DNA of 64,000 bases from Monocercomonoides exilis PA203. Its lineage: Eukaryota; Protista; Preaxostyla. How positions within the stretch are numbered: the first letter of the stretch is position 1; every line of letters starts with the position of its first letter. The position numbers were made by a program, and so were the translations under genes. The stretch is taken from contig LSRY02000014.1 in the NCBI GenBank assembly GCA_001643675.2, positions 1,736,001 to 1,800,000 of the forward strand, given 5' to 3'. This document shows positions 3,178-48,100 of this stretch, in pieces. Under the pieces are notes generated by a model, which was not told the DNA's origin, ran no database searches, and saw nothing but the letters and a program-made list of their open reading frames with translations.

Positions 3178-6100
3178 ATGCTAATTGTTTTATTTCGACT
3201 ATATATTTTGTTACAAGGATTCTTTTTTGGTGAATCTTTGAATAAGTGTTTTGATAGAAATGCAAAGAATGATTTCGATTTCCAATATTCACCACAATTA
3301 CATTCTTTTCGTTGTCAAAAAAAAGTGAACTGTCTGGATTATTCATTTTATTTTGAGGCTAAAGATATCGCTCGAAAAGCATATGTGTGTCCATTAAATT
3401 ACAATCAACTGTTTTTCCTTTTCAATTCCTCAATGGATATAATTCATTTGAGCTTGAAATCGTGTTCAAAAACACATTCTTTATGTTGTGATTCACTTTC
3501 ATCGTTGAATATCTTGCGTTTAAGCTTTTTCACATCATCTTCATCCTTGAGTCCAATCATCACATCATCAGGAAAAGTTAATATGTCAGTTATAAATATC
3601 GTTCTTGTGGATCATTCACAAACAATTGGAAACTCGATTGTTCACAGCAACAACTTTGAATCGATTGTTTTTGCTCACTCAACAGTTGAAAACTTTGTTT
3701 TGATGGAATTTGATGGGACAATGTTGTATTCTGGAAAGGTTTCGAACGTCATGATGGAACACTGCCGATTTCAGAACATTTCATGCTCTCATCATCCAAC
3801 CGGCGATTATAATGACAAACCAACATCCAAACGGATTGATATTTCTTCTTCATTTTTCGAAAACTGTATTCAGCCATATTACGGATCAATGGTGGTTCCA
3901 TCCAGCATTTCTTTCATCACTAAAAACTCATCATTCAATACATGCCAAAACAGCGTAATTTTTCCCAACTTATCATATGATGCAAGAGTGACTTTCAACG
4001 AAGGAAACATTTCGTAAGTTAATTGTTTCTTCAAATGCTCATCACCCAATAATTTTGGAGGTGCTTTGAGCCTTGTTGGCGAAGAAATAATCTGCCTTGT
4101 TTTGAGATGCCATTTCAATGAATGCTCTTGTGGAACACCAGATATCAATTGCGATGGTGGATCAATGTACTCCACATTATGCAAAAAAGTGGAAATTTTT
4201 GATTCAAATTGCACAAATTCAAATGCGTCTTTCTGCTGTGGAGGAATCACTTCCAATTCAGATCAACAGTTTTTCATGAATAACTGCTATTTTTTCAATT
4301 GCCACTCTGAATTCTATGCAGCCATTTTGATCGAGCATCCTGATGGTTCTTTTGTTGATTCAACAGTGGTCTCCTCATGCACTGCGACAAATAATGCAGG
4401 AATGTGTTTTTATGCAGCAAATGGAAAAGGATACATCACCGATAGTTATTTTAAAAGCTGTGAATCTGAATGTTGTGGGGCTTTAACTTTCAACAACATT
4501 TATGGTGTCAATCACGATGGAACAATAAAATACTGCTTTTTCAATAGAAATGAGGCAGATGATTCCACACGTGGAAGAGATATCACGCTCATGGAGAGCT
4601 GGATTAATAAAATATCTGATTCAGATGTTGTTGGATGTTATTCAACAAGCAGCTATCCTCGAGTGGTTGATGGCACAAACAACAAGGATTATTGGCTTCC
4701 AGATGCTGTTGTATCTCTCGAAAGTCTTGATGAGTTGTTTGTCTCTTGGCTTAGAGGAGCAGATGAATCTGGCTGTGGATATCGAGCCAGACCTTTCAAG
4801 ACCATCGGATATGCTTGCTCTGAACGGTCAACTCAATATGTAGTTGTTTTCAATGGGCATTACGAAGAAAATATTATATCAGTCAATTCATTCAAAACGG
4901 AATTTATCGGTCACAGATGTGACAATTCGATTGTTCGCTCCATAGATGTGACTTCTGGAAAATCTCTGATTTCAGTGGATAATGGAGAACTTATCATTTC
5001 TTTGTTCACTCTCGTCCACGATTCTTCAACCTCAGCTAGTGGCAGTCTTTTGTCTGTGAATGGAAACAGTATAGTGAAGTTTGAAGGATGTGAGATTCGA
5101 AGCGAGTCCGAAAGTCAGGCACAGCTATTCAGTCGGTCTTTGATTGAAGCAAAAGGTAAATCGACAATAATCATCAACAATTGTTTGTTCAAGCACATTT
5201 GTTTGGAGGATGATCCTTTGATTTCAATGGAATCAGTAAATAATGTTGCTTTTTCAAAATCAGTGTTCGATGGCATTGTGCGAAAGTCAGGAAACGGTTC
5301 GTTGATTGAAGTGACAGTGGACGAGGGTGAGAAATTGATTCTTGTGGATTTCAGGATTCGGAACTGCTCTTGTCTCGATGGAAATGATGGTGCATTGATG
5401 GTGAAGATGAAAGATAGAAGTGAAGTGTCAATAGGCAACAAAAGCTCAAATGAATTCGGAAGTGGTTTCGAACAATGCAAGGCAGATAAAGGAGGAAGTG
5501 AAAGAGGCGTTGGAGGAGGAATCATGATAGACTGCTCTGCTGGAGGGAAGACTTTTGAATTTGGAAGCATCATCTTCACAGGGAATCAAGCAGTGAATAG
5601 AAAGAATGTGTTTGTGATTGCCACAGGGGCTGAAGAGTTGTGCTTTCGTTCAAAGTTTGGCTTTATTCTTGATGAAAATTCACTGGATGAGCTGATGGGA
5701 TTTGAGGAAAGCGAAATAGGGACTGCAATCCCTCTTGTTCTGTTTTGGAAGTCATTTCCTTTGTTCGTGACTGTGAGTGGATCAACTGGCTCTGATCATT
5801 TGAAATGTGGATTTTCAGTGTCTCCATGCAGAACATTACAATATGCTGTCAAGACTCATTTCAGTTCTTCCACAAGAAAAATCAAAATTGTCTCTCCTTT
5901 CAAGTTTGATTGCTCATCAGTTTTTGATTACTGGGGATATGATATTTCTGTTGAAACGAAGGGGACAGTGATTGAGGTTGTTGGGGATTCATCATCTCCT
6001 GAGAATGGATTTATTGAAACAAGAATTGAGACAGACATTTCAAACATATCGTTCTCTCTTCCATCCTCGTTGCCTCAGAGCAAGCCACTTCTGTGCTGCA

Positions 6101-9100
6101 CTTCACATTCGTTGAATATCCTCAATTGTTGTGTCGTTCCATCTGAAAGTAATGTTGTTATTGAATACTGCTTCTGCTGCGATCTCAATGGAACAATGGA
6201 CCTTGATCACTTCGAAGTTTCAGACATGTGTTTTGGTGGCTTTCCTTTCATTTGTGTTTGTGGAGAGAATGCAATAGGAACATAAGATTCTGTTATTCTG
6301 AAAAATGTCACAAGAAATTCAAATGATGGACTGGTTGTAGCCGAGGAAAGAGGATCTTTTTCCATCCAAAACTCAGAGTTTTCATCTTGCACATTGGACA
6401 ATTGCAGTGCCATTTTCAACAAAAATGGAAATTTTGTGAATATCACAAACACTGATTTTCATTCAATAACTCGCCAGAAGCAGAATGGTGCTTGTCTTTG
6501 CATTTCGAGTGAAAACAACTCAGAAGCTGTATCAGTCAATGTTTCTTATTGTGAGTTTTTGAATTGTGGAGTTGAGTCAAAATCAAACGGAGGAGGAGCA
6601 ATTTATGTCTGTTCAGAAGATCAAATCTCATTAGCAGTCGAGCAATGCAGTTTCACTTCATGCCATGCGCCTTGGTCTCAACAAGGCATCACAAAGGATG
6701 GAAGAGGTGGTGCACTATTTCTTGATTTATTTGGCGAGAATCCCTCATTCACAATTGCAGATCACATGTTTTCAGAAAATAAAGCGCAACATGGCAAAAA
6801 CATGTTTCTGAAGGGCAATGATCTGAATTCCACTGTCACAAATGATAAGTTTGCTTTTCAATATGGACAGATGGCGAGTGATGAAACGCTTTTTGTTGGA
6901 AGCGATGCAAATCTGTCAAATACTGATCTTTTCCGATTCCTCATCAAAAATGAGAATGGAACTGTGTTTGTGTCTGAAGATGGGTCTGATGTTTTGAGAT
7001 GTGGAAGCAATGAAGATCCTTGCAAATCCTTTTGGAAAGGGATGAAGCAAATCAAGTCCGATTCTGTTGAAAAGAAAATAAAGACAAAAGGAGAATGTTC
7101 TATCAGAGATGAATTTTTCATTTCCGATTTGGTGATTGAATCATCAACAAGCACAACTAATGAACCTGAGATGAGCAATTTGATGCTTGAGAATGTGTCT
7201 CCTGACAAAAATGTGTTGCTGAACGTTAATCGCAATATGACAATTAATCATGTTCGAATATCCACAAGCTCAGATTTTGTGTGTCTGAATGATGCTCTCA
7301 TTGCCTGCCAAAATGGAAACATCACAATAATGAGTTGCCAGTTCCACTCACTTGCTCCACACACAAATCCTCTTTCAGTTGAATTTGTCCAAATTCTCGA
7401 GGGATGTTTGATGATTCAAGATTTGGAAGTGGAATCAATAAACATTGGGCGAAGCATGATCGTGACTTCCAACAAGGTGAATGTTGAAATTATTGAAATG
7501 AAAATCCAATCAGTGAATCTGGCTGAAGGAAGTCTGATCAATGTTGACCATGTTCCCACAGACGAAAGAAATAAGGAGAAAAAACAGATTCAAATCAACT
7601 CTTCTTCTTTTCTTTCAGTGAACGGAAAGAATGATGAGAGCCGTGTTCTGAGTTGCCTTGACTCCACAAACACGAACATATTCATAGGAACATCGAACTT
7701 TTCTGGATGCCAGTCACCGGAAACACAGAAAGGAGGATGCATTCTCATTAAACTGTGCGAGGATGGAAATTTCCACTTGAAAGAATCCATCGTTGAAATG
7801 TGTGGGTGCTCAACATCAAATGGAAGGGGAGGTGGGCTTTATTTAAGAACAGAACTCGCAGCAAAGCTCAGCATCCAAATTGAACCAATGAAGTTCGAGG
7901 CCAATACAGCCTATGTTGGGAGAGACATATTCATTGAATGCAACGATCTGAACACACAACTGAACGAGACAATGTTCAAAATGGATTTTGATCCGAGCGT
8001 TTTTGTTCATGTGAATGCCATGTCTGGGATTGACAAAAACGAATATTCATCTGAGCCTGTGAACCTTCTCGACTTCATTCTCATTTATCAGTCAGACACA
8101 GTTATTGTGAGCTCAGAACAGAGCAAAGGAGGGAAAGATACAAAGCAATGCCGAACAACTGCTCTTCCTTGTGCCACCATTGGCTACTCCCTCATCCATC
8201 TGACTCATAAAGTGGACAGCAGACTTCTTGTTGACTTGCAGAGTGTGACCAACTGCGAAATCGAACTCTGTGATGTGATCTTGATGTCACGAAAGAAGAC
8301 AGCAGCTGCTATTGAAATAGAAGAAATCACGGAAATGGAAAAGAGATGCATTGTTCAATGTTCGGGTTCGGTTGTTATAAAGCTAATTTCTTTCTGCTTC
8401 CCAACAAAAATAACAACAGCTCACTCCTCATTCTTGTATTCAGAACATGCAGCTCTCTCAATTGAATGTTGTCAATTCTCGGGAAAGACAAGCATTGATA
8501 AATCTCACATTTCATTTGCTCTTGTGGAGCTTGTTGATTCAGAATTGAGTGTTTTTGATCTCTTGATTGAAAACATTTTTGTGGCATATCCTTTTCTGAT
8601 TTGTATTCACTCTTTTTGTGGGAATTTGTCTCTCGGCAAGGTCAGAGTGAATTCTGTTCAAGTCGAAAAGAATATTGTCATTATCGAAGGGAAAGAAAAT
8701 GTTGACACCGATCAAACCAGAGAATCTTTTTATTTTCTCCACTTAAAGTTCGAGAATATCAGCATTTTTGGTGAAGAATCTTCAGTGATAAGTGTTGACA
8801 AATGTGAACATAAAATAGGTTGTGCAAATATATCTGTTGTTCACAAGTGTTGCAAACAAAAAAGGAGGTGCTTTGAAAATGAGTTCATGCCAAAACATTG
8901 CTCTGGATTCATTTTTGTTTGATGGAATTGCGGATGTTAACGATAAATGGGATGAGTCGAATGCTGTGCAGGATGATGTTTGCAGACGGAACGGATCAAT
9001 GGTGGAACTCGAAAACACACCAGCAACAGTGAAAGACACCATCGTATCAAATGCCTCAATTGGAGGGTTGTCTGTGAGAGGCGGAAGCGTTATCATTGAA

Positions 9101-11077
9101 ATGGGGTTGTTCACAAATAACAATCCAAGATTCACAAAATACCCATCTGTGAGAAGAAATATTCTCTGCTCAGATTCTGGAGTGTTGAATGTGATGAGTC
9201 TGAAAGGAGGAGATGGATTGGAGAGAAATACATCGTTGTGGATTTTGAATGAAGGATGTGAATTGGAAGGGACGATTGAGGAGAGAGCATCTCCACTGTT
9301 CATTCCAGTTGTGGAAGAGGCGAGAAATGAGACAGCATCAGATGGGAGAACAATGATCACTTTGATTGGAAGGCTTCTTCTCCCCTGCAATGTTTCGTTG
9401 AAGTTGAGCTTCAGAAATGGAAGGGAAGAGGTGATTGAGAGCTATGGGATTGGTGAAAAGGAAAGTGTGTCAGAGAACGAAATTATTGCAGTTGTTTCAT
9501 CGGCTCAGATGGGAGCAGTGGGAGAAGAGACAGAAGTGTCTGTGAGTGTTCTGTTTGGAAAGAAAGAATCTCCTTCATCGACTGATTCATTTGTTCTGAA
9601 GAACAGAAGCGAAACCCAAGGAAAGGGAGATGACAGAATTGTTGAAGGAGGGAAAGAGGGAAAATCTTATTGGTTGTTGATCGTGATAATCATGGGAATC
9701 GTATTGATAATCGTTCTTGTTGTTTCCATCATTCTGGCCATTCGGTGGAAGAAGGTAAAGAATGAAGCAGAAGATCTGAGAGAGATTGTGAATGACAACA
9801 TCAGAAAAGATCCGAAGGCATTTGAGATGGTGACGATGGAGATGTCGCCTGAGGAGCAGTGGAGGAGAGCAGAGAGGGAGGCAGAGAAGAAGAACGATGA
9901 GAGGATAAAGAAGAGGGTGTATGAGAGGAATATGGAACATTCGGAGTCATCAGAACATCTTCTGTCTGAAAGTGGATCGACTGAATACATCTTGGGGAGA
10001 GATTCAGACAAGATCTTAGAATGGGCATTGGAGAAAGTTGATGAAAAAGAAGAGGAAACAAGGAAGAGAACACCTTCACCTTCCATTTCATCCATCTCAT
10101 CCACTTCAACAACTGATTCAGATTCCACTTTTGTTCGTGGGGAGGATTTGTGCCCCACAACCTCATCGATGTCGAATCTGGTGGATGCAATGGCCTGCTC
10201 ATCGCCTCATGAGAAGCTGATTGTGGATTTGAGGGATTCGCTGTTCATGCTGCTTCATGGGAGGAATGAGAAGAAGGAGATGGCGATTGGGAGTTTGAAG
10301 GAGAGGGAACAGACAGCTGCACAGATCCTGTTCTGGGTGGCGAATGGAGCACTGCATACATTTGATGAAGAAAAGGAATTGCCATCGCTGGCCAATCTGA
10401 GTCCTCACATTGTGCTGTTCTCAGAGCACATGGTGATCTGCATTGCCCTCCACTCCGACTGCTCATCTTCAGACGATTCCGATTCATCATCCATCTGTTC
10501 GATGTCCATGGTTTCTTCATCCTCGTCAAATGTTTCAGTGATGAGCGAGAGATTCACCGACTCACCACCACGTTCATCAGCGTTTGAGGATTGTGAAGAC
10601 AACAGGAAGGAGTGTCTGAGGTGGAAGGCACCCGAGCTGCAGATGAACAAGAAGATGGGAGAAACAAAGGAGTCAGTGGCATTCTCGATTGGGATGATGG
10701 TGTGGGAGTGTCTGACACTGGATATCCCGTTTGGAGAATACGAGGCAGAGGTGGCAGGAGATAAGATATCGAAAGGGGAGAGGCCGAATGTTGAGAAGAT
10801 CCGAGGGAGTGAACTGTATGAGGTTGTTTGGTCATCGATGGGAAAGGACTGGAACGATCGTCCGACACTGAGCGAGATGAAGCGGGAGTTTTATGGGCAT
10901 TTCCCGGCAGGGGCTGTGATTGTGACGATGTCGGATGCGATCTGTGAAAGGGGTGGGGAGAGCACGAGAGAGGGGGAAGGCAGTTTTGCGAGTGGGGAAG
11001 AAGGCTATTCGACAGTTTTTGAGAACACATCAGAGACAACAAAGAAGACAGAAAAGCAGGAGATGAAAGAGCGGTGA
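3178..11077 (+). pseudogene. Disrupted giant receptor-like gene: signal peptide, four Cys-capped beta-helix-like modules, TM helix, TKL-like pseudokinase
   Basis: ORFs 3166-4017, 4066-6285 and 6394-8922 are in one frame, separated by single TAA codons (4015, 6283) with coding-like sequence straight through. A frameshift at ~8820-8850 leads into ORF 8822-11077. The whole is colinear with the intact paralog at 45182-54265. Confidence 0.85.
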
Positions 11078-16400: not shown

Positions 16401-17789
16401 TTGGTTCCTCATTTCCTGCACTGCCTCGCCTCTTCAAACCCCTGCCATATTCACCTGCCTGCCATCTCAACTCCACTTCGGCACACGCTCAGAAATCAAT
16501 TTTCTTCATTGAACAGCATTGCTGCCTTCATGCTGTATTTATAAAAACAAACTGCATGTCATATTTTATTGCATTTCGAAGTCGCTCAGGATCGGCCTTT
16601 CAGAGCTTAATTATACCTGCCTGATAAATTGTCTTTCCACATCTCAAAGTTTTCAGGTGCAACATGAGTTACGCTGTTGGTATGGCCAGTTGAATTGGAA
16701 GCTGCGCAAACGGTAGAATGCACCAAAAGCTATCAAACTTCTGACTCAAACGATAAGTCAGAAAGATTTTTATTATCAATTGATGCAGAGTTATCAGTGA
16801 ATATGGAAGTTTTGCAAACAGGCAGATCAGCTATCGCAGCAAAGCATTGAACGATGTTGAGGTCCAGATAACAGAAGGAAGCTTAAAAAAGGAGGAAGCG
16901 GAAGAAGGATTGTCAGAGAGGAAGATGAGGGAAAAGAAGTGTGGATGTCTGAAAGGAAGTTGCAAAAACGCTAAGGGAGCTTTTGATTTGTCTAAAGAAA
17001 AACTTCCTGAATTGCATAGATTCTTATCTTAATATTTTTTCTTTAATAATTTTTCTATAACTTTTTTAAATCAAATTTTTAAATCAATATCTTATTGAGA
17101 AACATTTGTATATGGGTAAATTTTTTTGAAAAGTTCCTCGACTTTAATTCTGTCCCACAAAAGATCAAAAATGATCAAAAAATATCGATCATTCCGTTCC
17201 CATTTAAGTTTCGAAAATGTTATTTGTTGTTATTTATTTCGCTTTTTATTGAAAAATAGGATACAAATTTGTTCATATCATATAAACTTTTAACTTTATT
17301 ACGAAATACACACTTGTTAGCAACTGCTTTCCAGCTATTTGAATCATATGAGTTGCATATTTTTATTTCTTCAATTTCATTTCATTAGTTCGAATATTCG
17401 TTATAAATTTATGGATGTTCTCTAAGTTTTTGTTATTTTCTTTTGTTGCAAACCAAATAAAATTGATTTGCTTTAATTCGAGAATTTTTCATTAAAAAAT
17501 TATCAGTTAGGAAAAGTTTATCAAAAATACACTTGTAACAATCGGAAGATATTTAAAAAGGAGTTGACATAAAGCAATTATTAATAAAATTTCAGAAAAT
17601 TGTGGAATGAAACATTTTTTTCCCGAAATAAACTGGAGTTGTTACAAACAAAAACAAATTTTATAAAAATTAATATTCAAATAGTTTGAATCATTCAAGT
17701 TTCTTTCATCTTGATATGTGCCTTTTTCTTCTCCCTTCCATTTTATATAAATACATTTTTGAAAGATATCCTGCTTCAAATATTTTTAT

Positions 17790-20700
17790 TGCTCGAAAAA
17801 TGAAGATTTCCGTGGCTGATTGATCTTCCTGATCCGAATGTGGATGTTGTGTTTGTATTTCCATTGGAGCTGTTGTATGACACGAAAGCCTATTTCAAAA
17901 TGCTTCTTGTGGCAGGGGTTGCGCAGAAGTCGTCTCTTCGCTCAGCGCCTGCGTCTTCTTTGTCTTCTTCAACTGGAGCAGCACGCCGATCGACTTCACC
18001 ATTTCGGAGGCGGAGAAGCGAAGAGAAGAAGGCGGCAGGAGATGATCAGCCATCATCAGCGCCTGCGATTGATCCTTCGGATGCGTCGGTGGTGGCAGCG
18101 TCATACACATCGGCAGGAGCGATGGACAACATCAAGAGGCGGCTGCGGATTGCGGTATCTGAGGATGCTGGTTTGAATGCGCTGCACATACCACAGTCGC
18201 TGCTGCTACTGTGGGGACATATTGAGGAGCTGTGAGCATTGCAGTGTGGGAGTGTTTTGTGTGTGCCTATGACGTGGCGCTTTCGGTGATGCTTTCGGTT
18301 CCGCTGGTGGCTCTGCTTTCTTCGCTTGTAACGTCGGTGTGCACGAAGTCGGGGAGCAAGTGGATATTTGCGGTGGCAGATGTGAATGCGATCCCGTCAA
18401 TCTATGATCTATTTGACCCATCAACGCAGATATGGAGATCACAGCAGTCGAGGTGTGCGGATGTGAAGTTGGGGAGATTGATTCGAAGGAGCTGTCAGAG
18501 GTGTGGCTGGGGATGGAGGATGTTATTCTGTCACAAGTATCGCTTGCGCTGGCTGTGCTGGAGGAGCAGGAAGAGGCAGAGGAAGGAGAAAGGGGAGGCA
18601 AAGAGGGAGAAGAAGAGGGAGAAGAAAAGGGAGGTGATGGGAATGAGGAGAAAGGCGGCTATCCAGCAGCGCATTGAATGTTTGTGGAGAGAATCAAAGG
18701 GAATCAGGGGAATCTGTAATAAGCGAGGCGCAGCTTGTTGTGGAGGAGCTTGGGCCGTGTCGGCTGAGGTTTGTGAAGGCTGATGCTGAGGTGGGTGTAA
18801 GCAAGCAGCATGCGGTGGAACCAGAAGTATGCAGTTCTTTGTCAGCCTATTGCATACAACAGGAGAACAGAAGAGCAGAAGAAGCAGCAGATGGGCCTTT
18901 GGGAATAATTTCAGATGGAAGTGAAGGAAGTGTGAGGAACAGGTGGAAATATAAGTTGATCATTTGACAATTATTGAGGAAAAAGATAAATCCGATGAAG
19001 AAGAAAGGTTAGATAGTCGTTTGACTTATGAGGAGTGATAAGAAGAAGAAGACGAAGAGGAGGAAAATGGAAGGAAAATTGAGTGCAGATAGAAGATGGA
19101 GTGTCGTGGTTGTTCTATTTGGTTGAGGAATTAAAAGAAGTGCCTAAAACCAAAAAGGCAATCAACAAAAGATGCTTGCGCGCATTGCACATGGGAAGAC
19201 TTTTGATGTGCTGGGCGAGCTGAACATGCAGCTGCCTTGAAGCTGTGCAAAGATGCAGATGAAATGGCGGAGATCCAGTTGAGAAACAAAGTCGAAGAGG
19301 AATCTAACTTTAGAGCCGAGCTAGATCCTCATGCAGCATGGGACAGAGAGTGAAACAAGGATAAAGCAGGCGATTTCAGAGGAATTTGTCGTTATGGATA
19401 ACTCCCTTGTTGAATGGTTCGAGCACAAAGCAGAGGAGTTCGAGTTTGTGATTGATATCTATATCAGCCAGGATGAGCTGAACCTCCTTGCGAATGTGCA
19501 CATTGTGATGAAGCAATGGTTACTGTACTGCGGAGTGAAAGCGTCTGTTGTGATGGAGCACAGATGATTCCGCGAAGGTGAAGTTCACAACGGAGAAAAG
19601 AATTGAAGCTTCACTGCAGAGCAGAGAAGGAGCAGAAGCAGGGAATGCGAAGGAGATTCTGAGCAATTGTTCAGCTACACTGTCAGTGCATGCGTTTGAG
19701 TGCGTGCTTGATAAGGCGTCTGATGCGGATAAACAACTGTTTTGGCAGGGTGAGTGAATGGAGGCAGAGGTGCAGAAGAGGGGGAAGCGGGTTCATTCAA
19801 AACGTTAGACAAGAGAATCGGTGTTGAAGAGGAATTTGTTCAGAAAAGACAGTCGAATGCTGTACAGACGATGGGTTTACGCGGCTATGATGCTTCGTAC
19901 GCCATTTCTAACCGACCACGCTTTCTCAGCGGTTGTTCCTATGGATGCTCCCATAGCATTAAAGATGGCAGCAGAGAATCTGCATTACAATTTTATTTCT
20001 TCTTCTTCTTCTTCTTCTTCTTCTTCTTCCTCCTCCTCCTCGTCGTCGTCTTCTTTGTAATTTTCTATTTTTTTTTTTAGTGTCTGTTCCTTCTTCTCAT
20101 CCTCCTCTTCATCTCAAGTATCTCATCTGTCACATTCCTCTTCTTCTCTCTCTTCATCAGCCTCAGCGCACACATCTCTGGAAGCACCTGCTTTGAACAG
20201 GATTTCAAATGCGTGTTTTCCGACAAGTTGCTCATCGATGTGCTTGTATCAATGGCTTCACAGTGTTTGCGCAGCTCCATCGACCGCCTCATCTCCAGAT
20301 GCGACGAAGAAGAGCACTTGTGCGACGAAAGGGACAAAGGCATCGGAGGTGGTCCATCATCAAGGTGAGTAGGAGATTTGAACAGACGAGGAGGCGAATA
20401 GAAGAAGCGCTTCTGCGACGAGGTGTGTAAAGATGGAGAGAGCATGCCAATGAGAAGCGGAGGCGCATCAGTTGCGGAAGAATAAAGATGCGCAATAAGA
20501 GCAGATGATAGGGATGAGGAGGAAGTGGTGGAGAAGATAACAGACGAAGTGACTGCAGCTGGCAAGTTTGATGAGGTAGTTGGGGCCACAACAGCAGCAG
20601 ATTGTTGGAGGCTTCCTGGATGAGCCAAATGAAAAGTGCGGGAAGGAGAGCTCGCCTGTGCGAGTGACTGCTACGATGTGGCTGAGGAAGTGCGGGTGTG

Positions 20701-22030
20701 GAGAGAGTTCGTGTTCAAAGAGGAAGACAATGATTGAGATTGAGATTGAGATTGAGATTTAGACTGAGACTGAGACTGAGATGAAGGCTGAGGCTGTCTG
20801 GTGAGTGCAGGGCCAGGCGAGGTGGATGTGGACATCTGCCGGATGGGCTGAGAGAAGGAAAGAAAAGCAGAGAAAGAGGAGGAAGCGAGAGATGTTGGAG
20901 AAGTCAGAGAGGCCAAGGAAGAAAAAGCAGAGGATGATAAAGGTGGAAGTGAAGACGACTACGACGAAGAAGAAGAAGATGATGATGATTCAATGAATGT
21001 AGTTAAAGATCCCTCAAGCACAATCGCCGGAGCCAACAGAGATGCAGACACAGAATACGATGTGTCATCAAAGAATGAGCGAAGCGTGGCTAACGCAAAA
21101 GTGGTAGAAAATGAAGTGTTTGAGGTACTGATTTCAAAGCGGTGCGCTGTTGATGAGTGTGTCCGTGCCATTGACGTGGTTGTTTGAGTGATGGCGGGTG
21201 CAGGAAAGATGGGGGAAGTGGCTGAGAAAGAGGCAAAGGTGGAAACTGTCAATGAAGGAGAAGTAGATATAGAAGAAGAAGAAGAAGAATTTAAAGGAGG
21301 AGGAGGAGAAGGGGAAGAAGGAGGAGGAAGAAGAGGAGGTGAAGAAGAAGATAAAGGAAGAGGAGGGGAAGGAAGAGGAGGGGGAGGAGGTGAAGAAGTA
21401 AAAGGAATGGAAAGAGAAGAAGAAAGAGAAGAAGATGTAGAAGAAATAGAAGGAGGAGAAGAAGAAGAAGAAGAAGGAAAGAGAGGAAACAATGGCTGGA
21501 GTTGAATGGTTTGGGGAAACGAGTGGAGATGAAGCAGGCGGTTGTGCAGGAGTTTTTGAATGTTTTGAGCAAAAAGAGGGAGATGATTGAGGATGAATGG
21601 AAGGCGATGTAGTATGTGGAGAGGGAGAAGATGCATGCGGCGCGGATGTTTGCGTGTGATGTGGTGATGATGAACACTACAGCTTCGGAGATGTCGGCAG
21701 AGGTGCTGATGCAAGCGACAGGATTGATCGCGCTGCAAAATGGCAGTGCGAAAAGGACATAAATCATTGCACTTGGGTATGATGGCACTCTTACGTAATT
21801 TTGTGGGTAACACTTTTTGCTGAGAAAAGTGTTTGTGCTATATCAAGAACATTTGATGATTAGGTCGTCGAATGTGTGTTGCAGCAGAGAGTGAGGGCTT
21901 ATGGTGGGGTGAAAGCAGAATGGAGGGTACTGGAGGCAGATTGGAGGGACAGGAAAAATATGTCGCAGGATGCGTAAAATGAAGTGCTGCTTGAGTTTCT
22001 GGAGAAGAAGAATGTGCAAAGAGTAGAAGT
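17790..22030 (+). pseudogene. Stop-riddled, GC/purine-rich remnants of unidentified protein-coding gene(s)
   Basis: Coding-like composition sharply different from the AT-rich flanks. Many short broken ORFs in alternating frames, with embedded microsatellites. No family recognised. Confidence 0.45.
20733..20782 (+). repeat. (GATTGA/GACTGA)n hexamer microsatellite
   Basis: Direct reading of the sequence. Confidence 0.85.
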
Positions 22031-22289
22031 GGATTTGTTGATGATTATATGGTAGTTAATGGAGAAAAGTGTATCTGAACTTGTGGTTTGGATACTGTTG
22101 GATGCATGTTGGATGGTGCTGTGGTGCTAATGCATGAGATAACAAAGGTGAAAGGTAGGCAAGTGTGTTGGAGTTTCTCCATTTGATAAATGTGCATATT
22201 TTTGTGTTTGGGATAGAAGAAGAAGAGCAGTGGGATGAGGAAGAAGAAGAGATGATGATGAAGAGAGAATGAAAATGGAGCGAAGAAAA

Positions 22290-22600
22290 AGGGATGACGG
22301 AAGAGAGAAGATGAGTTTTGATAATTCCGTTTCAACAATTGCTTTTATCAAAGCTGAATTGGATGTTGAACCTGAATCAGAGACTGCAGCCACTTTGATC
22401 ATCATTTCCCCTGATTTCATGCTTCTGATCAGCAAAGGTCAATTCATCACTCATCTGAATCATTCCATTCACAACAACTTTCTTAACCCCTGCAAGTCGT
22501 GTGAGAGAGCGCTTCATTGTCAAACATGGGAATTGAACAATTCCACAATGTGAGTGATCGGATGCCTCGGAATGGCTCACATATATTTCTTCTGGAGAGA
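22290..22600 (-). pseudogene. Receptor-ectodomain module-start fragment inside the 17114-23172 element
   Basis: SDHSHCGIVQFPCLTMKRSL matches SDHLKCGFSVSPCRTLQYAV. After a frameshift, ALIKAIVETELSKLIFSLPSSL matches GFIETRIETDISNISFSLPSSL (ORF 4066-6285). Confidence 0.75.
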
Positions 22601-23899
22601 GAAGGAGATGAACTCAGATTTATGTATATAATGTCATTGAGAATACAAATGTTGTCTATCAATTGTTAACTATTCAATTAAAAAAACATGATATAATAAT
22701 AAATAAAAAATAAAATTTATTTGTTAAAATTAAATGGAAACCACTAAACTTATCCGATTAACAGTTGCATCGTATGTGTGTTCTATCTTCGCAATCATGT
22801 CAAGTTCACGTGCATAATGCAAAAGAAAAACTCCACTCAAAGGAAATTTTAAATAAACATTTAAAATCAAGTTTGTCAGGATAAAGAATTGAAACGTACC
22901 TTGCACATTTCATTAATAAACAATTGCATAACCATCCATGCTAATTAAACCTTTTCATATTCAAAAACTGAAATTTTTATTTTGATCTAAATACTGGATA
23001 TATTATTTTTAGTTTCAAATAGTTTTTTCTCACAAAGAAGTTTGCAATGAACAAACAAACATAGTTGAAAAGGTTTAATTTTTTCATTTGAATTATGGTA
23101 ACGGAATGTTTAAAAATAAACTTCCATGGGTCAAATTTTTGATCTGATGTCACTTTTCAAAAAAATTTAGCCATATATAAAAATAAGAAACTTTCTATTG
23201 CTAATATGATTAAACATCTGCGTCACATGCCTTCTGACGTGAACATTTTAGGAGTGACGTGACGTGAATGAAAAAATTTTATTTTCTTATAAAAAAAATT
23301 TGAAAAAATAAAAAACAAGACATGCAAAGAAAAATTGAATTTTTTGTAATTCATCTTTCATTATTGAGAAGGCTTTTAAAATTTTTTTCATTTTATAAAA
23401 TGTTCATTTCAATTTTTATATGAACAATGGGTTGCGTCGTGATCATTTTTTAATGGTATTAATACCAAGGCATTCGCTTCACTGCCTGTCACTGACGTGA
23501 TTTAAGTCAGTGGTCTATTTTTTCAAATGTTTGTTTTTTTTATTTGAAAAAATGTTTATATGAAAGTTTTAAACTTGTTAAAATTTTTTATTTATCGTTT
23601 TTGAATAATTTTTATTTTTTCATTTTTTCAAATATTTTTTCTAACTTATTTCAATCTTTAAAGCACGCCCTTCACATAGATTTGGATCGGACAAAATATG
23701 TGCTTATCAAAACTCAAACAATGGCAGGAGTTTAGAGGCTGAGTATCAGAAGCGAATAACGGTTCGGAGAAGATTGGACGTGCAGTAGCGTGCGAGGTGC
23801 TGTGAGAATTTGTCAGCAGGCATGGGATGTTGAAAAGTGCAGAGCAGCAGCAGAGTTGGTTGTGATGGAGTCACAGTTATTCATGTTTTCAATGATATT

Positions 23900-24890
23900 T
23901 CAAAATTGAAATGGGAGATTGAGGAGGAAAGACGGATGCGTGCTGGTGGTTGAGGAGTGTGTAGTGAGATGGGAGGAGCTGACACAGATCGATATGCAGG
24001 TGATCCAACAGAGGAGGGAGCGTGCGGAGGTAAGGAGCACAGCAGTGAGCGGGGTGTTTGGTGCGGGGAGCAGGAGCGGGCTGTGCCGGATGGAGTCGCA
24101 GCTGGTGCTTGTGGAGGAGTGCGAGTGCCGGGTGTGGAACACGAGCGTTGTGAACTCGTCGAAGGGCGGGATCGGGCAGCGCGGGGGCGGGGTGGTAGAT
24201 GTGCGGGGCATCCGGAACGGGGAGCGGGCGGGGGGGAGCAGGTCGTGGTGGATCATGGAGGAGTGGTGTGTGGTGGAGGGGGCGAGTGGAGGGGCAGGCG
24301 GTGTGTACTTCCGGCCGGTGCTGACGAACGTCAGCTGGACAAGCAGCGCGGGTCAGGCGCGGCTGGAGTTTGTGGAGCGGGAGCTGGTGCAGTGCGGGCT
24401 GTTCTTCCAGATAATTGTACGGGGGGGCAGATGGGGGCAAGCGGGTGAGGACATACCGTTTTGAGAGCACAGGGCAGAACACGGAGCGGTGGGGGTTCGG
24501 GAGAATCGGGCGGGAGGTGATTGAGGAGAGCGAGGCAGAAGAGGAGGAGCTAGCGCGGGTGATGTATTCGAGCGAGGAGCTGGCTGTGGAGGAGTGGAGA
24601 AACGGGGAAGGGGGAGAAGGGGGAGAAGGGAGGGCAGGGGAGGATACAGTGAACGATGAGGCAGGGGAAGGAAGAAAGTTCAACGCAACAGCAGCAATTA
24701 TCTGTGGAAAGGAGAAAGAAAGGGGTGGGCAGTGGGAGGGGACTGTTTGAGCTGCATGGGTGGACGATCATACTGCATATTGAAGTGAGTACGGTGGGCG
24801 TGACATTGGTGATGACTGTGGGGTTCCACATGCAGCTGCGATGGAAGAGGAAGCAGCAGGAGCAGCGGCTTGTGCAACCCAAGGAGATTT
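23900..24890 (+). pseudogene. Captured receptor fragment: membrane-proximal ectodomain plus a TM-like segment
   Basis: LCRMESQLVLVEECECRVWNTSVVNSSKGGI..SWWIMEEWCVVEG..YFRPVL..LEFVERELVQCGLFFQII aligns with VCKWNGSVVEVKESSGEIRDTSFVNCSDGGL..SLWILNEGCEISG..FFIPEL..LRFKGKLLLPCNISFKIV. A hydrophobic stretch then RWK follows. Confidence 0.75.
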
Positions 24891-25454
24891 AAGAAGCAAA
24901 TTGGAAGAGTAAAGTGTGGAATAGATGCTCCGAAAGCATCGAAGGAATTGAAGGAAGAGCTGGAGAAGAAAGTGGTGATGAAGGATGGAGATCCATGATG
25001 GAAATAAAAAAGGGAATGGGGGATGTGGAAACGGAAGAGTGGAGGTGAAGTATGGGGTTTAGGAAGAGGAAGATAATTCTGAATATCAAGTTAGAGAATT
25101 GTTTGGAGTTGCGAATAAGAATGCAGGACGGATGCTGGAGCAGCAGCACTGCGAGTAATTTTCAGAGAAAGTTGTGTTGTGGGGTATGCACAGGTGCCGT
25201 CACATCCAGCGGAGCGGGGAGTCCTGGATGCTGCTGATGAACTTGAACCCGTGAGCAGTGATGGTGAATGGACTGGATGTGGCGATGAAGCAGGATAAGA
25301 TCCAACGGCGAGGAGAGGTGCGAACGTCGGAGGAGTGGGAAATGCAGTCAAAGGCACCGGATATTTTAGCGAGAGAAGATTATGGGAATGAAAGGAGGAA
25401 AAGGGAGCTGAGGGAAATAAGAGATGCAGTGCGGCTGGCGAAAAAGAAAAAGAA

Positions 25455-25512
25455 TAAGATAAAGATAAAGATAAAGATAAAGATAAAGATAAAGATAAAG
25501 ATAAAGATAAAG
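25455..25512 (+). repeat. (GATAAA)n hexamer microsatellite
   Basis: About nine tandem units read directly. Confidence 0.9.
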
Positions 25513-27928
25513 AAATGGAAATAGAAATAGCAAAAGAAGATGAGAAGAGGAGGAGGTGAAAGAAAAAAGAGGTGAAGACGAAGTATTCAATGGAGAAAAA
25601 GAAGAAAAAGAATATGATAATGACGACGATGATGAATGAATAAAAAGGAAGAAAATCAAAACCATCAAAATGAATAGCAATGACGCGCATTAATTTTTTA
25701 TTCAGACAAAGAAACTTTCACAAAAAGGAGATGAACAACTTTCAAAATGAAAATAAAGAAACAAATTCTGAATACAGAAAACAAAAAAATATGTAATTTT
25801 TGAAATCATTTTTTTTTTTAAATATGAAACATGAAAGTATTTCTTTTCATATTCATGGACAATATATCTTTGATTCACTTTTATTTTAAAAAACTCGCAA
25901 TATTCTTATTTTTGTCAAAACAAACTATTCTTAACAAAAAAGAATTAATCATCTATTGCAAATGACAATAAGCATTATGGAAAATCGTTAAAAGAATGTC
26001 TATTGAAGATAATATTTTTTTAAACATAAATACATACTGAAGTTTTATTCTTTTCAAATATGAATTATAATGAAAATGCAAAATTGAAAATAATACTTCA
26101 AAAACTTTAACAAACAAATTGAGCAATCTTGTTGCACAATTGAAGTGAAAGTTATAACCTCTGTGAAAGTATGAAAAAGAACTGAAATGAAATAATGTTT
26201 AATTAAGGTTTGTTGATTGACAATTGTGCAGAAATTTTTTTCGAAAATTATTAATTGTTGGTAAGTGTTTTATCCTTTTCAAAACAAATTTCAAAAAATT
26301 GTTTGTTTTTATCAAATTAAAAAAAAAAAAAAAAAAAACTGACGGGCACTGACTGACTTGGTCTCGCCTTTTCAAAGGTGACGCAGATGTTTAAATATGA
26401 TAATGTATTTGTTGTTTAATCATTTTAAATGAAAACTGCCTTTTACATAGAGAGTTTATAATAAATAATAACTGCTTAAAAAATACCAATCAGATTATAA
26501 TACCTCAATAACCAACAACACCGCATTTCTTTTTAAAAAAATAGTTTTATTTGTCATGAAAATTATAACAGATATGTTTTATAATCTATTGAACGCGTGT
26601 TAAGTTCTCTTTATTAAAGTTTTGCAATTTAAATAAAAATTTTAAAAATTTTCTTTGAAAACTGAAAAAAACAAATATTAAATAATTAATATCTATAAAT
26701 GAACAATAACAATAATAATAATATTTTTAGCAGTATTTTCGCATAATTTTACTTATTTTTTTCTTATCAGCCCAACCCTTAATGAAATATATATTTGATC
26801 AAACGTCGGAATTTTTTATGATATCAAAAAAATCACCCAAATTCAAAAGACCTTCTGTCTCAAAAGAAAAAAAAAATGAGACAAAAAATAAAAGAAAACC
26901 AGTTTACAAACCTCTGATTGAATATTTTTTTTGAGGAATTGTGTTTTTGTTGAGATGGAAAAGCAACAATTTAATCAGGCACTATTTTCAGTGTTTTGAA
27001 ATTTTTCAAGATCTATCAATTTCACCAACTTTTTGTTTGATTTGATTTCACGAAACCCTCCTTCCCTAGCTCCTCTCAAAACAGTGTAAGATTTTGTTGC
27101 AGTTTTCCGAGTAACTGAGTATTTCTTTCTATTTTTGTTCATTTGTAAAAAAAAAATGAGAAGAGTTATTGATTATTAAATACAGCATTCAGCATGTGAA
27201 AAAGGAACCCTTTATTTTCATGAAGTTTTTATTTTCACTTTTTAGAAAAAAACCTCAATTAAAAATGCTCACAAAAAATGAATTCCAAGAAAAGAAAGAT
27301 AGAAAAGAAATTATTGATTTTGGATGTCACTTGCTTTTTTCATGAGAAGCCATTCTGTTCTTTCTGAAACAAGAGATGGTTTTTTTTTTTGTTTTTGAAA
27401 AACAAAATCGTGATTCTTTATTAACGATTATAATTCCAATTTCTTTCATCATTTATTTTTTCATTCATTCTGACTTTTACAGACATTTGATTTCAAACAA
27501 ACATTCAGTCAAAAACAACTTGAGTTGCTGTTATTTCCACCTGTTGAAAAGAATAAAATATGACAAAAAAATCTAATTTGTGAAATGGAACGAATTGCGG
27601 ATGACATTGAAAAAGATGATAGATGAAAAAAGGAAGAGCGAGAACAAGAAAAGAACGACAGTTTTCATCGAACAACATTTCTTTCATTCTTAAGTGTTGT
27701 GATTGATCCGAATCAGTCCATCCATCTTTTAATTGCAAAGAAACCTCCACTTTTTTTCATGATGAATTCCTTTTTCCTTTTCATTATTTTTCGTTGCTTC
27801 TCTCCATTTCGAAGGAATGAAAAAATCTTAAAAACAACTTTCAAACAAGTGTTTGCGTTCGAATTTGTGAAATGAAAATAAATGAAAAACATAAAATGAT
27901 TTGTGTTACAAAAATCAAATTCAATTCC

Positions 27929-43140: not shown

Positions 43141-45181
43141 CTTCACCAATTATTTTGGCACTCACAAGAAATCATCAACTTTTTCGCTTCATGCTTATTT
43201 GAGAATTATCTTTGCCAAATCAACAGACAACAAAGAAAAAAACAGAAATATTTTTTTTTGAGAGATTTTCTGTTTCAGCTCTGAAGAACTGAACAAATGG
43301 GGAAAAAGATATATTTGTTCAGAATACATTAAAAGAAAAGCCAACATCAAACACTGTTGTTGATAACCGAACACAAAGAAAAAGAAAAGAGAAGACAATT
43401 TAAACAAAAAAATATTGCTCTTGGAGAGATATTTGGATTCAGATGAAGGACTATTCTCAGCATTTCTATTGTATCATTGCCACCAAAAAAGAGATATCAT
43501 GAGTCAGCTTTGGTTCAAGTTAATGTTTAACTAAAAAGACCATGATGAGTCCATCCATGAATAAAACTTTCCCTCTCCCTTGAATTTATGGCTCGATGTG
43601 AAGATGAGATGAAATCCCTCAGATATTGTTTCTTTCTCATTCGATAAAAAGAAACAAACATTTTCTTTTGAAGTTTCTCCTCAACAAAAAGAAGATAAAA
43701 TGGAAATATTCCATCAAATAAAAAACAGTTTGAAAACTCTTTGAAGCGAAAAACAGAAGAAAATATATGAAAAAGAAAAGGAAATGAAGGAAAAAGTTGA
43801 AGTCGATACATAACAGTTATTTGTGTTTGGGGCAAAAAGAAGAAAACCGAAATGGAAAAATAAGTTTATATATTTTGTTCTCAAACATTTAAAAAAATTA
43901 CGATAGTTTCATCAGCTCATTGTTTGAGCTATCTTTGCAATTTCCATGTTGAGATGATCCTGTTTGAGTTTTAAATATTTCAAAATGTTTGAAAAAAATA
44001 TTTATGGAACATTGAATATTCCATTGTGGAACACAAGATATTCAACAGAACAAGAACAAAAAATATAATTTATTATCATTATCTAAAAAATTTCGAAATT
44101 TAAATTTTCCAATGAAAATAACACATCATAAAATTTATTATAATTTTTAAATAATTTCTCTCTTTATTTTTTATTCATTATCGTGTTTATGCATTTCTTT
44201 TTGTTTTCATTGGAGATTTGAGAATGCAAGGATGGGTCATGATCTTTTTATTTCACGAATAAAACGATAGAGAGCAGGGTAACAACAAAGAAAAATGCCA
44301 CAAATGATTGAAGAATAATTATACTATATTGTTTACGTGCTCCTAAAAGTTATATAATCTGAATGATTTGTCGGAATGATTATCAATTGTTTTTGATGCC
44401 AACGAATTTTGGAAATAAGATTTGAGCAGTCTATCAACCATATGCATCTATTCTGAGAGTTTTATCAGGAGGATGACTGAAACGACATTTAAACTCTTTG
44501 TGGCAGGGCAATCTGAAGCAAGACTTTTTCAATAATTCTGCGATTTCTCGGATTCAAGCAACATTCAGCAACCGAAATGGAATAGAACCTTCATAATATT
44601 GTATTTTCTCAAAATATTGCTTTCTGCTATTTTTTTGATGGGCAGAGGGATTGGCAACAACGAATGAATCATTTGTGAATTTATGATGCCAGCTCAGCAA
44701 AATATGAAGTTGGAAATGACATTTGGCTCGACAGAGAACATGGCCATTGGAACATGGATTTTGGGGGAATTAACAAGGAAAAATGATTGAGAGCATTTGC
44801 AAAAAGAAGATTTCTTTCAAATGGAAAACAGCAAAACTCGTCATTGATCTGAAAGAAAGAAGAAAATTTCGCAGTCGATGGGGGAATGCTGTTGATATTC
44901 TGTGGAAATGATAATATTTCTTCGAAAATGACAAAGTCTCATCTGAAATGTTTGGAATCATATTTTGTATTTTTTTTTGAATTTTTTGAGTGAAAAATCA
45001 ATTTGTATGCTTGACATTTATTATTTTTGCGCATGGAATTATTTGAGGCTATTTTGAGAATTTGAAGAAAAAAATTGTATATCATGATGATGAAATGAAG
45101 AATAATATGGGCTATGTTGTTTTTTTGATTTTTCACTACACGTTCTTATCTGGCACAAGGAGCGAGTTACACAGCAACAGA

Positions 45182-48100
45182 ATGATGAACTTTGTGTTTT
45201 TTATCACTGCGTGCGTCTTTGCTATTGATGAGGCAAAAGAAGCATCAGCAAAGGAGATGTGCGAATTGGATGCAAAAGTTGTGTTCCGGCTGTCAGGGAA
45301 CATGAATGATAATTATGAACCAGAAAATAATCAGAATAGCAAGATATTATCGACATTTGTTGCTGTGAACAGCTCAGTGAGCGCAGCGAGTGTGCTGCAG
45401 ATTCAGCAGGAAGGAAAAGCTTGCTTTTTTGTTTGTGAAGGGTCAAGACTGGATATCAAAGGATGCATGATTTTTATTTCATCACAAATGAGCCCATTTG
45501 CGGTGGATGGAGGAAGCATGCATTCAGTGAATCTGACGATTGGAACTTTGAAGCCATTTGCACCAATTCCGCGACTTTTTTGCTCATCTTTCAAAAATTC
45601 TGAGAGAGATGGAACAGACTCGATAACTCTTCGAGACTCGTCGTTTTCATCATTTGAATTGGCATCTGCTCCATTTCTTGCACCGGATGCGAGCTGCTTT
45701 GTGAAAGCCTCTGGTTTGAAGATGACAAATATTTCTATTGCATCAGGAGCGCAAAGGGAAATGGATTCGAGAGCAAGAACAGAAACAACGATTGAAGGCT
45801 GCTCGTTTTTCAGAGTTTGGGATGCTGTTGATGGGGGTATTTTGATGTCAGTGAACAGCCCATGTGCCTCGCTGAGAGCAACAAACACCTTATTTGAGTG
45901 TTGCTTTCGAACGATGAATGTTGATGAATCAGGAGGACGCAACATGACAAGGTGTGAACTGGGAGCCAATGAAACACATTCTTTCACGGATTGCGAATGG
46001 TATCAAACGGGACATGTTGTATCTGGAAGTGCTATTTATTTGAATGGAAATTCGACTCTTGAATGTGAAAGATGCTCATTCAAGAACATGAGTCAAGTTG
46101 GCGATGGAACAGTTGATGTTCAATCAGCAGCAGGTGTGAAAATGTTAGGCTGTAATTTCACAAATTGCTTGGCAGAAACAAATACAGGTGGAATGATAAT
46201 TTATGAGCAAAGAGGAGACTATTTTTTTTCTGAATGTATCTTTTTTGAATGCAAGGCTAGAGTTAACTATGCAGGAGGATTACGCATACACCAATCTTCT
46301 GGAAATGAGGATGAAACAATTGAGAAATGCAAATTTATTCGCAATGTCGCAGGATCATTTGGTGGAGGATTATATATGGAAAGACAGTCGAATTCATATA
46401 TAATTTCTGAATGTGAATTTGAAGGAAATTTAGCAAATGGAACAGGAACAGAAATACTAGAAGGTGGAGGCGGAGGAATACGTTTAAATTCAGCAAGTTG
46501 GATGAAAACTGAACCACCTCCAAAATTGATATCATTTTGCTTATTCAGTGGAAACAAGGCAAAAAATGAAGAAGGCCATGATGTTAAAATCAAAAATTAT
46601 TTTTTGAAAGGTTCACCATTTGAGTCATCGTTCTCAACAACCCCCTCAAAGAGAGTATTTTACAACGACAGCCAAACAGATTTTGATTCATGGCTTTTTA
46701 CAATCAAAACAACATTTGCCAGAGCAGATGGGATTACAGGGCCTGTGTGTGGGACAACACAGACCAATCCATGCAACACGATTAAACAGGCATTCAACAT
46801 GATTGAGAAAGGAGCAGAAGGAACAGTGAATATTCTTCAATCGACCTTTTCTTCAACGGCTCTATTCATTGGAGGGGGAGATATTACATTCAAAGGAGAA
46901 AGCGAGAGCGAGTGTATCATTTCCACAAAATTGCTGAATTCTCATGAGTGTTTGTTCACATTGCATTCGGGATCGATGGGATTGTCTTTGGTGACAATTC
47001 GACACAACAGCGCAGAATCATCATCTTCCTTGTTTGAGATGAGAACAGGAGCACAGAAACTGACACTGAAGAATGTGATCATATCAGGGGCAGAAGATGG
47101 GCAGAGTCACACATTTGATGTTTCACCATTCAAAGTGATATTTGAGAAAATGAAGATGGAAAACTGTTTGATTGAGGATATTGGACTGGGAGATTGCTCA
47201 TTGTTTGAGGAAGAGGAGGAAAGTGGAGTTGGGAGAGGGATGCTGGGAAATGTGACGATCCAAAGGATCAGCCGAATGAGAGGAGATGGGGTGATATTCA
47301 GCACTGAAAGTGAGAGAAGCGATTCATGGGAGCTGGAGAATAACACATTCAGAAACTGTATGAACAAGGAAGGGAATGGAGGAAGCATTGCTTGGAGTGT
47401 TGGTCAAAGTGGGATATTCAAGATTGGCAGAGGAGAGGTGACAACGGTGATTGGGGAGTGTGGGGCAGAGAATGGAAGAGGAGATGAGAAGGGAAGAGGA
47501 GGAGGGGTGTATTTGGAGTTGTCTTCTCCTTCAGTTGTGTTTGAGATTGTGAATGTGGGATTTGAAAATAATTATGCAGAACATGGTGTGAATGTGTTTA
47601 TTGCTTCGAATCAGCTGGAATTGGTTCCGAAAGGGAGATATGGATTTATTTCGCTTTTGAGCGAGGATGTGCATGAAGTGGAGGGAATGGGAGACACGAA
47701 CAATGCAACACTGGTGATTCCGATTGTGTGCTATCTCCTGGATGTTCCGAGGAGTGAGATCTATGTTTCAGCTTCAGGAGCTGATCATCCTCGGTGTGGG
47801 CACACATTTTTCGAGTGCCGAACACTGAGCTGTCCGATCGAAAGGGAAGAGAGCACACCAGGAGATGGAACAACAACAGCGACAATCAAAGTTGGAAATG
47901 GAGTTGAGGTTGGCTCGACAGTGATCTTTTCGAAATTGACAAGAGTGATTGAAGGAACAGGGGATGATGGATCGCTTGTTGTTGGAGGTGAGGCAAGTTG
48001 CAAAGGAGATGAGGAAGGATGCATTGGAGTGTTTGTGGTGCTGAAGGAGACAAGGATGAGGAAGATTGAGCTGGTGATTCCATCTGTTCTTGAACGTCAT

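Follow-up and report, generated by a model that had tools for sequence, protein, structure and literature searches.

The window analysed here is a 64,000-nucleotide stretch of the genome of the metamonad protist Monocercomonoides exilis PA203 (contig LSRY02000014.1, positions 1,736,001 to 1,800,000, forward strand), and coordinates given without a contig name refer to it. Between positions 23203 and 26401 the window holds a transposable element of 3183 bp together with its 8-bp target-site duplication, one copy of a family that recurs elsewhere in this genome. The element is very probably a non-autonomous transposon of the hAT superfamily that carries a captured piece of a receptor gene, the capture being a single old event and the insertion a fairly recent one. 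Its parts are given below with position and strand, where L047 denotes a long family member that encodes a transposase, L063, L037 and L051 (see below) are shorter copies, and C29 is the contig bearing the genes that the cargo most resembles.

23203..23210, no strand: left copy of the target-site duplication, AATATGAT (flanks read; single-AATATGAT sites on contigs C1 and C74)
23211..23226, + strand: 5' terminal inverted repeat of 16 bp, TAAACATCTGCGTCAC (sequence, genome search and paired copies)
23211..23435, + strand: 5' subterminal segment identical to L047, with TGACG at 23235, 23255 and 23260 and an AT-rich spacer unlike that of other cargo-bearing copies
23436..23870, + strand: cargo-subfamily region, with a conserved subterminal block, TGACG at 23493, an AT-rich spacer and a G-rich filler at 23670-23870
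23871..24877, + strand: cargo block 1, membrane-proximal ectodomain and membrane span (C29 residues 2423-2786; tblastn, blastn at 85-86% to C29:953581-954647, codon alignment)
24878..25119, + strand: decayed remainder of C29:954648-955374 (weak collinear blastn matches to C29:954861-954938 and 955136-955251)
25120..25440, + strand: cargo block 2, with two stops, the juxtamembrane cytoplasmic stretch (C29 residues 3017-3120; tblastn, blastn)
25441..25690, + strand: purine-rich low-complexity stretch with an (AAGATA)n microsatellite (sequence)
25691..26377, + strand: 3' backbone common to all family members, with CTGAC motifs at 26340, 26350 and 26354
26378..26393, - strand: 3' terminal inverted repeat of 16 bp, the exact reverse complement of TAAACATCTGCGTCAC (sequence and paired copies)
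26394..26401, no strand: right copy of the target-site duplication, AATATGAT (sequence, paired copies and empty-site search)

The element and its family

The perfect 16-bp inverted ends and the exact 8-bp duplication that an initial annotation of this DNA had described were both confirmed at these positions, and the 48 bp that make up the ends and the duplications are without any change. The same annotation had recognised no transposase in the element, and this too held good: tblastn with the L047 transposase gave no significant match within the element, and a Pfam search of its open reading frames (ORFs) gave no match.

To place the element in its family, we searched the genome (82,301,135 bases in 101 contigs) with the 16-mer end, allowing at most one mismatch. 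The search returned 101 matches, 52 forward and 49 reverse, while the reversed pattern used as a control returned none in either direction. Forward and reverse matches lying within about 10 kb of each other were paired, and 30 pairs were fetched. The 8-bp flanks are identical in 22 of these 30 copies, and the remaining eight agree at six or seven of the eight positions; the chance of an 8-bp flank match, computed from the base frequencies of the flanks, is about 1e-4 per site. This survey of end pairs and duplications, which had been proposed as a check on the first description, thus places the element within a family. Beyond the inverted repeats, the left end runs on as ATGCCTTCTGACGT, and CTGACTGAC with a T-rich stretch stands before the right end, so that the family ends are asymmetric and every copy can be oriented. 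The clustered subterminal TGAC(GTG) motifs first noticed in the window element likewise turned out to be shared: the combined density of TGACG/CGTCA in the 30 copies is 24.7 per kb in left-end bases 17-116, 13 per kb in left-end bases 217-316 and 9 per kb in right-end bases 17-116, against a window background of 0.77 per kb, an enrichment of up to about 32-fold.

The family comprises long copies and shorter, cargo-bearing ones. The 3' backbone of the window element (25691-26377) is 60-84% identical to that of the long copies and about 90-96% identical to that of L034, L064 and L051, and its cargo-subfamily region (23436-23870) is 91-99% identical to L063, L037 and L051. The autonomous copy with a transposase that had been thought worth seeking is available as a candidate: L047 (C31:125154-134335, 9182 bp) has perfect ends, a perfect duplication and an open frame of 983 codons. 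Upstream of this frame lies an ATG-started stretch that is split off by an in-frame TAG (region L047:351-690, element 300-640); the TAG sits in a GT..AG interval of 60 nt that can be removed without loss of frame and is a candidate intron.

Some paired copies show later rearrangements of their own. Two cargo-bearing copies, L043 (C25:2467663-2470690) and L044 (C25:2474014-2477042), lie within a palindromic duplication; both of their target-site duplications are imperfect (6/8), and their outer and inner flanks are mutual reverse complements. A 5.86-kb copy with the same duplication (GTAAATTT / AAATTTAC) occurs at four places (L046 at C31:14664, L056 at C78:50853, L052 at C59:452112 and L055 at C78:16262), which indicates that the contigs carry duplicated segments or alternative haplotype pieces; the transposase of this copy is without residues of about 149-702. 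Nested insertions are found in two cargo-type copies, one of about 3.5 kb close to the 5' terminus of L034 (C7:1700449-1707050) and one of about 1.4 kb, holding a 378-codon ORF, close to the 3' terminus of L037 (C12:1564481-1568950).

Insertion site and age of the window element

The site that the element entered can be recognised in uninterrupted form elsewhere in the genome. Its right flank (26394-26848) is 97% identical to C1:2548227-2548679, and a 34-nt query composed of the last 13 left-flank bases, one AATATGAT and the first 13 right-flank bases identified sites with a single AATATGAT at C1:2548214-2548247 (no mismatch) and at C74:79821-79854 (one mismatch). The empty site that the initial annotation had suggested looking for is therefore represented by two paralogous loci, indicating that the 3183 bp inserted with an 8-bp duplication, and that they did so after the host repeat had itself been duplicated. 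The 45-nt stretch 23145-23189 was found at the window locus alone, and the paralogy of the empty sites consequently begins between about 23177 and 23190, just past the neighbouring element.

That neighbour forms the left flank and is the end of another repeat family (window 17110-23176, with 22700-23190 checked). At least 40 loci are similar to its part from 22700 to about 23180, at 73-82% identity, and about 27 bp separate the end of its terminal inverted repeat from the hAT target site. On the right, the flank (26394-26848) consists of a repeat of about 455 bp, with close copies on C1 (97%), C74 (94%) and C13 (91%) and dozens of copies at about 74% over the last ~270 bp only; the insertion point lies about 15-25 bp inside the left edge of this repeat.

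The window element is a mosaic. In a 6-row alignment its first ~225 bp show no difference from L047, including the variable AT-rich spacer; in an 18-row alignment the identity to L047 is 100% over bases 1-100 and 95% over bases 101-200. The other cargo-bearing copies have a different spacer and are 52-59% identical over bases 101-200. Past about base 290, the window element is of the cargo-subfamily type. Its cargo diverges by ~8% from the nearest sibling and by ~15% from the C29 gene.

These data bear on the possibility that the element is old and immobile, and that its perfect ends and duplication survived by chance or were restored by later conversion. The distance to its relatives is consistent with such an age: its closest sibling reaches no more than about 88-92% identity (a difference of 8-12%), near-identical sister insertions are missing, and a very recent burst is thus not in evidence. 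The empty sites, moreover, are paralogous and not allelic, which allows dating only relative to the 3% divergence of the host repeat, and the 5' ~225-bp identity to L047 could have come about through in-place gene conversion. We nevertheless consider an old, immobile element unlikely, given that all 48 bp of ends and duplications are unchanged, that the exact 34-nt empty site and a flanking repeat 97% identical to its uninterrupted paralogue put the insertion after a duplication diverged by 3%, and that a copy with an open transposase frame is 100% identical to the window element over ~225 bp, a sign of very recent exchange with a lineage that looks active. The sequence comparisons thus support recent mobilisation of an old capture, much as the initial annotation had proposed from intact ends around decayed cargo: the empty sites, the L047-identical 5' end and the broken, ~15%-diverged cargo bear it out. 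What has to be revised is the place of the capture, which is ancestral to the whole non-autonomous lineage and not special to the window element.

The receptor-derived cargo: a probable single capture from a C29-like gene

The cargo was traced through a 181-codon ORF at 23919-24461. In a whole-genome protein search, this ORF is 77-87% identical to a pair of giant open frames on C29 (3729 and 3733 codons), and more than 100 further giant open frames, 2000-4700 codons long, are similar to it at 25-35%. At the nucleotide level (blastn) three segments of the element correspond to the C29 gene:

element 683-986 to C29 953581-953884, 86% identity
element 971-1664 to C29 953962-954647, 85% identity
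element 1953-2204 to C29 955375-955626, 77% identity

By these alignments, the interior of the window element is the about 1.5 kb that remain of a roughly 2.07-kb segment, C29:953581-955653. The source gene is present on C29 in two copies, at C29:946293-957479 (+) and about C29:978689-981060 (-), about 20 kb apart and 96% identical over the 2.4 kb compared.

Towards its C-terminal end the C29 protein has a single strong hydrophobic span, the membrane span, at about residues 2747-2772. The cargo stops at residue ~3120, and the kinase-like region, located by comparison with the giant receptor encoded in the window, lies at about 3188-3301. As judged from its alignment, the cargo is a fragment of a receptor, without the kinase-like domain, and not a receptor. 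It is also much decayed. Cargo block 1 contains one stop and a 31-codon in-frame deletion, has to be read in three frames, which implies two frameshifts, and retains a remnant of the membrane span at about 24761-24826. The gene segment C29:954648-955374 measures 728 bp in the gene and about 240 bp in the window element, with ~490 bp lost; other copies retain this part. With the two stops of block 2, the damage amounts to two frameshifts, three stops, the 31-codon deletion and the loss of about 490 bp from the middle, and the window cargo is, on its reading frames, a pseudogene fragment.

The initial annotation had derived the cargo from the stalk and membrane span of the giant receptor, and at the level of the receptor family this is correct (C29 residues 2423-2786 and 3017-3120); the source, however, is the C29 paralogue and not the receptor in the window. 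The 3067-codon window receptor (membrane span at about 2598-2620) aligns with the C29 protein at the equivalent membrane-proximal place (33% identity, E 1.5e-15), and the match of the cargo ORF to it falls on residues 2434-2512, immediately external to the span. When the cargo was compared with the rest of the window by tblastx and blastn, only low-complexity matches and nothing significant appeared, so that a search confined to the window would wrongly have told against a receptor origin; the genome protein search and the direct comparison were decisive. With respect to the receptors themselves, the window ORFs 45062-54262 and 8822-11074 match the Pfam tyrosine/serine-threonine kinase model in the C-terminal half only (positions 160-257 of 258) and may be pseudokinases or very divergent kinases. 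Pfam gave no significant kinase match for the C29 protein (the Pkinase C-lobe appears at E 0.07), and for this reason we refer to the receptor family as kinase-like.

The distribution of the cargo over the family is clear-cut. The gene segment is present in all 17 copies of 2.2-4.8 kb and in one 6.6-kb copy with a nested insertion (18 paired copies), and it was found in none of the other 12 paired copies, of 5.3 kb or more (0/12). As a query against genome DNA, it matches only the second C29 gene (96%) and transposon copies, and in all it occurs at at least 30 loci. In the 18 cargo-bearing paired copies, the pieces have the same orientation and collinear order throughout. Several copies retain the 1348-1959 interval of the C29 query that is deleted from the window element; the pieces of different copies tile one continuous stretch of ~2.07 kb, and the outer boundaries recur. 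The presence of cargo in all copies of 2.2-4.8 kb and its absence from the long copies indicate one old capture followed by amplification. The simplest reading of these comparisons would therefore be that an ancestral deletion derivative once took up the segment from a C29-like gene and was then amplified, with independent internal deletions in its copies. The lineage was mobile after the capture, as at least 18 paired cargo-bearing copies sit at separate loci, each with its own duplication. The cargo is preceded in the window element by the G-rich filler (23670-23870, ~200 bp), which is present across the cargo-bearing subfamily and has no match to the C29 gene or to the long copies.

Several independent captures, with the window element or a close relative picking up its fragment recently from C29, would account for two features of the data. 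The window element and the copy at C25:1130679-1132379 are nearer to the gene (85-86%) than are other copies (62-82%), and a ~190-bp gene piece (element 884-1077) is kept in the window element and L063 and missing from L037, L051 and others. The extra 190 bp are, however, simply explained by a deletion in the other lineage, and an identity of 85% with frameshifts speaks against a recent pick-up. Furthermore, the left (gene query about 282) and right (about 2327-2354) boundaries recur across sublineages, and the orientation, the position in the backbone and the preceding filler are alike in all of them. Repeated capture is, in our judgement, very unlikely.

The direction of transfer might also have been the reverse, with the interior native to the element and a transposon piece taken up by the C29 receptor genes through domestication or conversion. 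In a tree of the most widely shared 550 bp, which is star-like and midpoint-rooted only, the gene sits on a short branch inside the polytomy and not on a long outgroup branch, which would suit this direction. A short gene branch is, however, also what purifying selection leads one to expect, and the remaining evidence points from gene to element. The frame of the C29 gene is open across the shared segment, and in each of the element copies examined this segment is broken; it forms an ordinary part of the receptor, matching more than 100 paralogous giant ORFs at 25-35% and, collinearly, the window receptor; it is absent from all 12 long copies; and a search of the 17 kb around the C29 gene for a family inverted end or backbone found none. 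We find the reverse direction scarcely credible.

The initial annotation had also seen in such elements a route for moving receptor modules around the genome. This idea gained no support: we found no case in which the cargo is built into another gene, the two source genes are the only long open frames with close matches, and the other close matches lie in short, broken frames.

hAT affiliation, mechanism and significance

The superfamily assignment comes mainly from the transposase of L047. Its C-terminal 100 residues match the Pfam domain Dimer_Tnp_hAT at 24.2 bits (curated cutoff 21.4), and its best solved-structure match is Hermes, in two collinear stretches. Relatives were sought in a library of 1.84 billion proteins, where the first 540 residues retrieved 208 at E up to 0.001, the best at 28-31% identity; those looked up are proteins from metagenome assemblies. 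Transposases of the hAT superfamily share a pair of aspartates, the motifs CxxH and RW, and a C-terminal glutamate. In an alignment of 30 sequences (L047 and 29 relatives), D210, D272, C309, H312, R362 and W363 are invariant and E955 is nearly so, and a profile of this alignment matched Hermes only among solved structures (E 7.5e-16), spanning first the CxxH/RW region and then the C-terminal region, in the right order. Pfam detected the hAT domain in one of 10 library relatives, which suggests that it covers this clade poorly. With 8-bp duplications family-wide, the hAT-like character that the initial annotation had read from the ends extends to the encoded protein, and by these sequence criteria the family belongs to the hAT superfamily. 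Membership of another superfamily with 7-9-bp duplications (P element or Merlin), to which the departure of the TAAAC end from YARNG, the failure of Pfam to find the catalytic core and the Merlin elements reported in metamonads (PMC8101967) might be taken to point, has next to no chance of being correct, given that Hermes is the sole significant solved-structure match, in two collinear stretches including CxxH, RW and the C-terminal glutamate region, and that the Pfam hAT dimerisation domain lies above cutoff and is carried by one library relative as well.

We propose that the window element was moved in trans by the transposase of long members such as L047, which would recognise the 16-bp inverted ends and the adjoining TGACG repeats (predicted binding sites), excise the element and reinsert it with an 8-bp duplication. 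When cut-and-paste elements leave a donor site, the break is repaired by copying a homologous template, and a switch of template during such gap repair gives rise to internally deleted copies or to mosaics of different family members and, in rare cases, brings in unrelated sequence. The receptor segment would have been copied once, into an ancestral deletion derivative, presumably as post-excision gap repair copied from one template and then jumped to another. The derivative would then have been amplified to at least 30 copies that lost different internal parts; the window element would have entered another repeat after that repeat's duplication, and its first ~225 bp would have been copied recently from an L047-like element.

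Besides the distance of the nearest sibling and the paralogous nature of the empty sites, several points weigh against this reading. Pfam was blank on the full-length L047 transposase and on its core, and the C-terminal domain was seen only when cut out; NCBIfam on the L047 transposase, and a solved-structure search with the core alone, likewise returned nothing. The blank on the whole protein is probably due to its long poly-serine tract, and this tract and the divergence of the sequence would hide the core matches. The element end TAAAC fits the classic hAT motif YARNG at four of five positions, the fifth being C and not G; YARNG is a tendency and no strict rule. The target preference nTnnnnAn is half visible: among 21 distinct sites, position 2 is T in 14 (p 0.008) and position 7 is A in 10 (p 0.23), both evaluated against the AT-rich composition of the flanks. 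The in-frame TAG near the 5' end of L047 calls for the putative 60-nt intron, L047 is a candidate autonomous partner whose activity is predicted from its sequence, and repair-and-copy capture is suggested by analogy with other cut-and-paste elements. Finally, for C29b, the second of the source genes, and for about 10 more copies, the data come from search tables only.

Gene capture of this kind has counterparts elsewhere. Pack-hAT and other Pack-TYPE elements, described in maize and rice (PMC8903248), are similarly non-autonomous, with family-typical inverted ends, 8-bp duplications and an interior taken from a host gene that survives elsewhere, and they too were moved in trans and amplified. 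They are found in plants and derive from many different captures, whereas in the metamonad protist a single capture is common to a whole non-autonomous lineage of at least 30 copies, the cargo is a decayed, intron-free piece of one giant receptor gene, and any chimeric transcript or use of that cargo by a gene is hypothetical. Histone H3 was transduplicated by hAT elements in Dothideomycete fungi (PMC6710886, PMC3538342), and there too a host coding sequence was captured once by a hAT element with inverted ends and 8-bp duplications and amplified to many, mostly inactivated copies. The fungal elements are, however, ~9.5 kb long and many have the hAT domain, while the M. exilis cargo is confined to transposase-less derivatives of 2.2-4.8 kb; and the fungal copies decayed by repeat-induced point mutation, those of M. 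exilis by ordinary substitutions, frameshifts and deletions.

In its general features the family resembles Hermes/Ac-type hAT elements, with an 8-bp duplication, short inverted ends, short subterminal repeats and a transposase with CxxH, RW and a C-terminal hAT domain, and its internally deleted copies would depend on an autonomous partner in the manner of Ds-type deletion derivatives. It differs from them in a transposase that is about 20-30% identical to its library relatives, is missed by the Pfam core models and contains long poly-serine and acidic inserts, and in an end that starts TAAAC and not YARNG. Rice Pack-MULEs provide a parallel in which gene fragments were captured between transposon ends and spread through the genome, but they belong to the Mutator superfamily, have 9-11-bp duplications and long inverted ends, often carry several fragments and are often transcribed. 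The window element is thus a well-supported further case of the known hAT gene capture, and no finding supports a function for its cargo.

A full-text literature search found no description of hAT gene capture in Monocercomonoides. The window element extends to a metamonad a phenomenon documented in plants and fungi. M. exilis was the first eukaryote found without mitochondria. In its genome paper, DNA transposons make up 4.5%, and the 35% of unclassified repeats overlap a tyrosine-kinase-like family (PMC8767320); in a text search of that paper, 'transpos' turned up in the repeat summary only and hAT went without mention. The receptor-derived cargo in at least 30 transposon copies represents a small part of this overlap between repeats and kinase family, and cargo copies should be masked before genes are predicted or receptor families counted.

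Together, the candidate autonomous L047 and a young non-autonomous copy with perfect ends form a named pair with which hAT activity can be tested directly. It is possible, if quite unlikely, that the family is still active with a working L047 transposase, that the mosaic in the window arose by a very recent excision and repair, and that the 30 or more fragments of stalk plus membrane span serve the more than 100 giant receptor genes as exchange templates or give rise to small RNAs against those genes. If the family is active, such fragments could shape the largest surface-receptor family of the cell, and the defined hAT pair would be the first transposon tool for M. exilis, which to our knowledge has no genetic tools.

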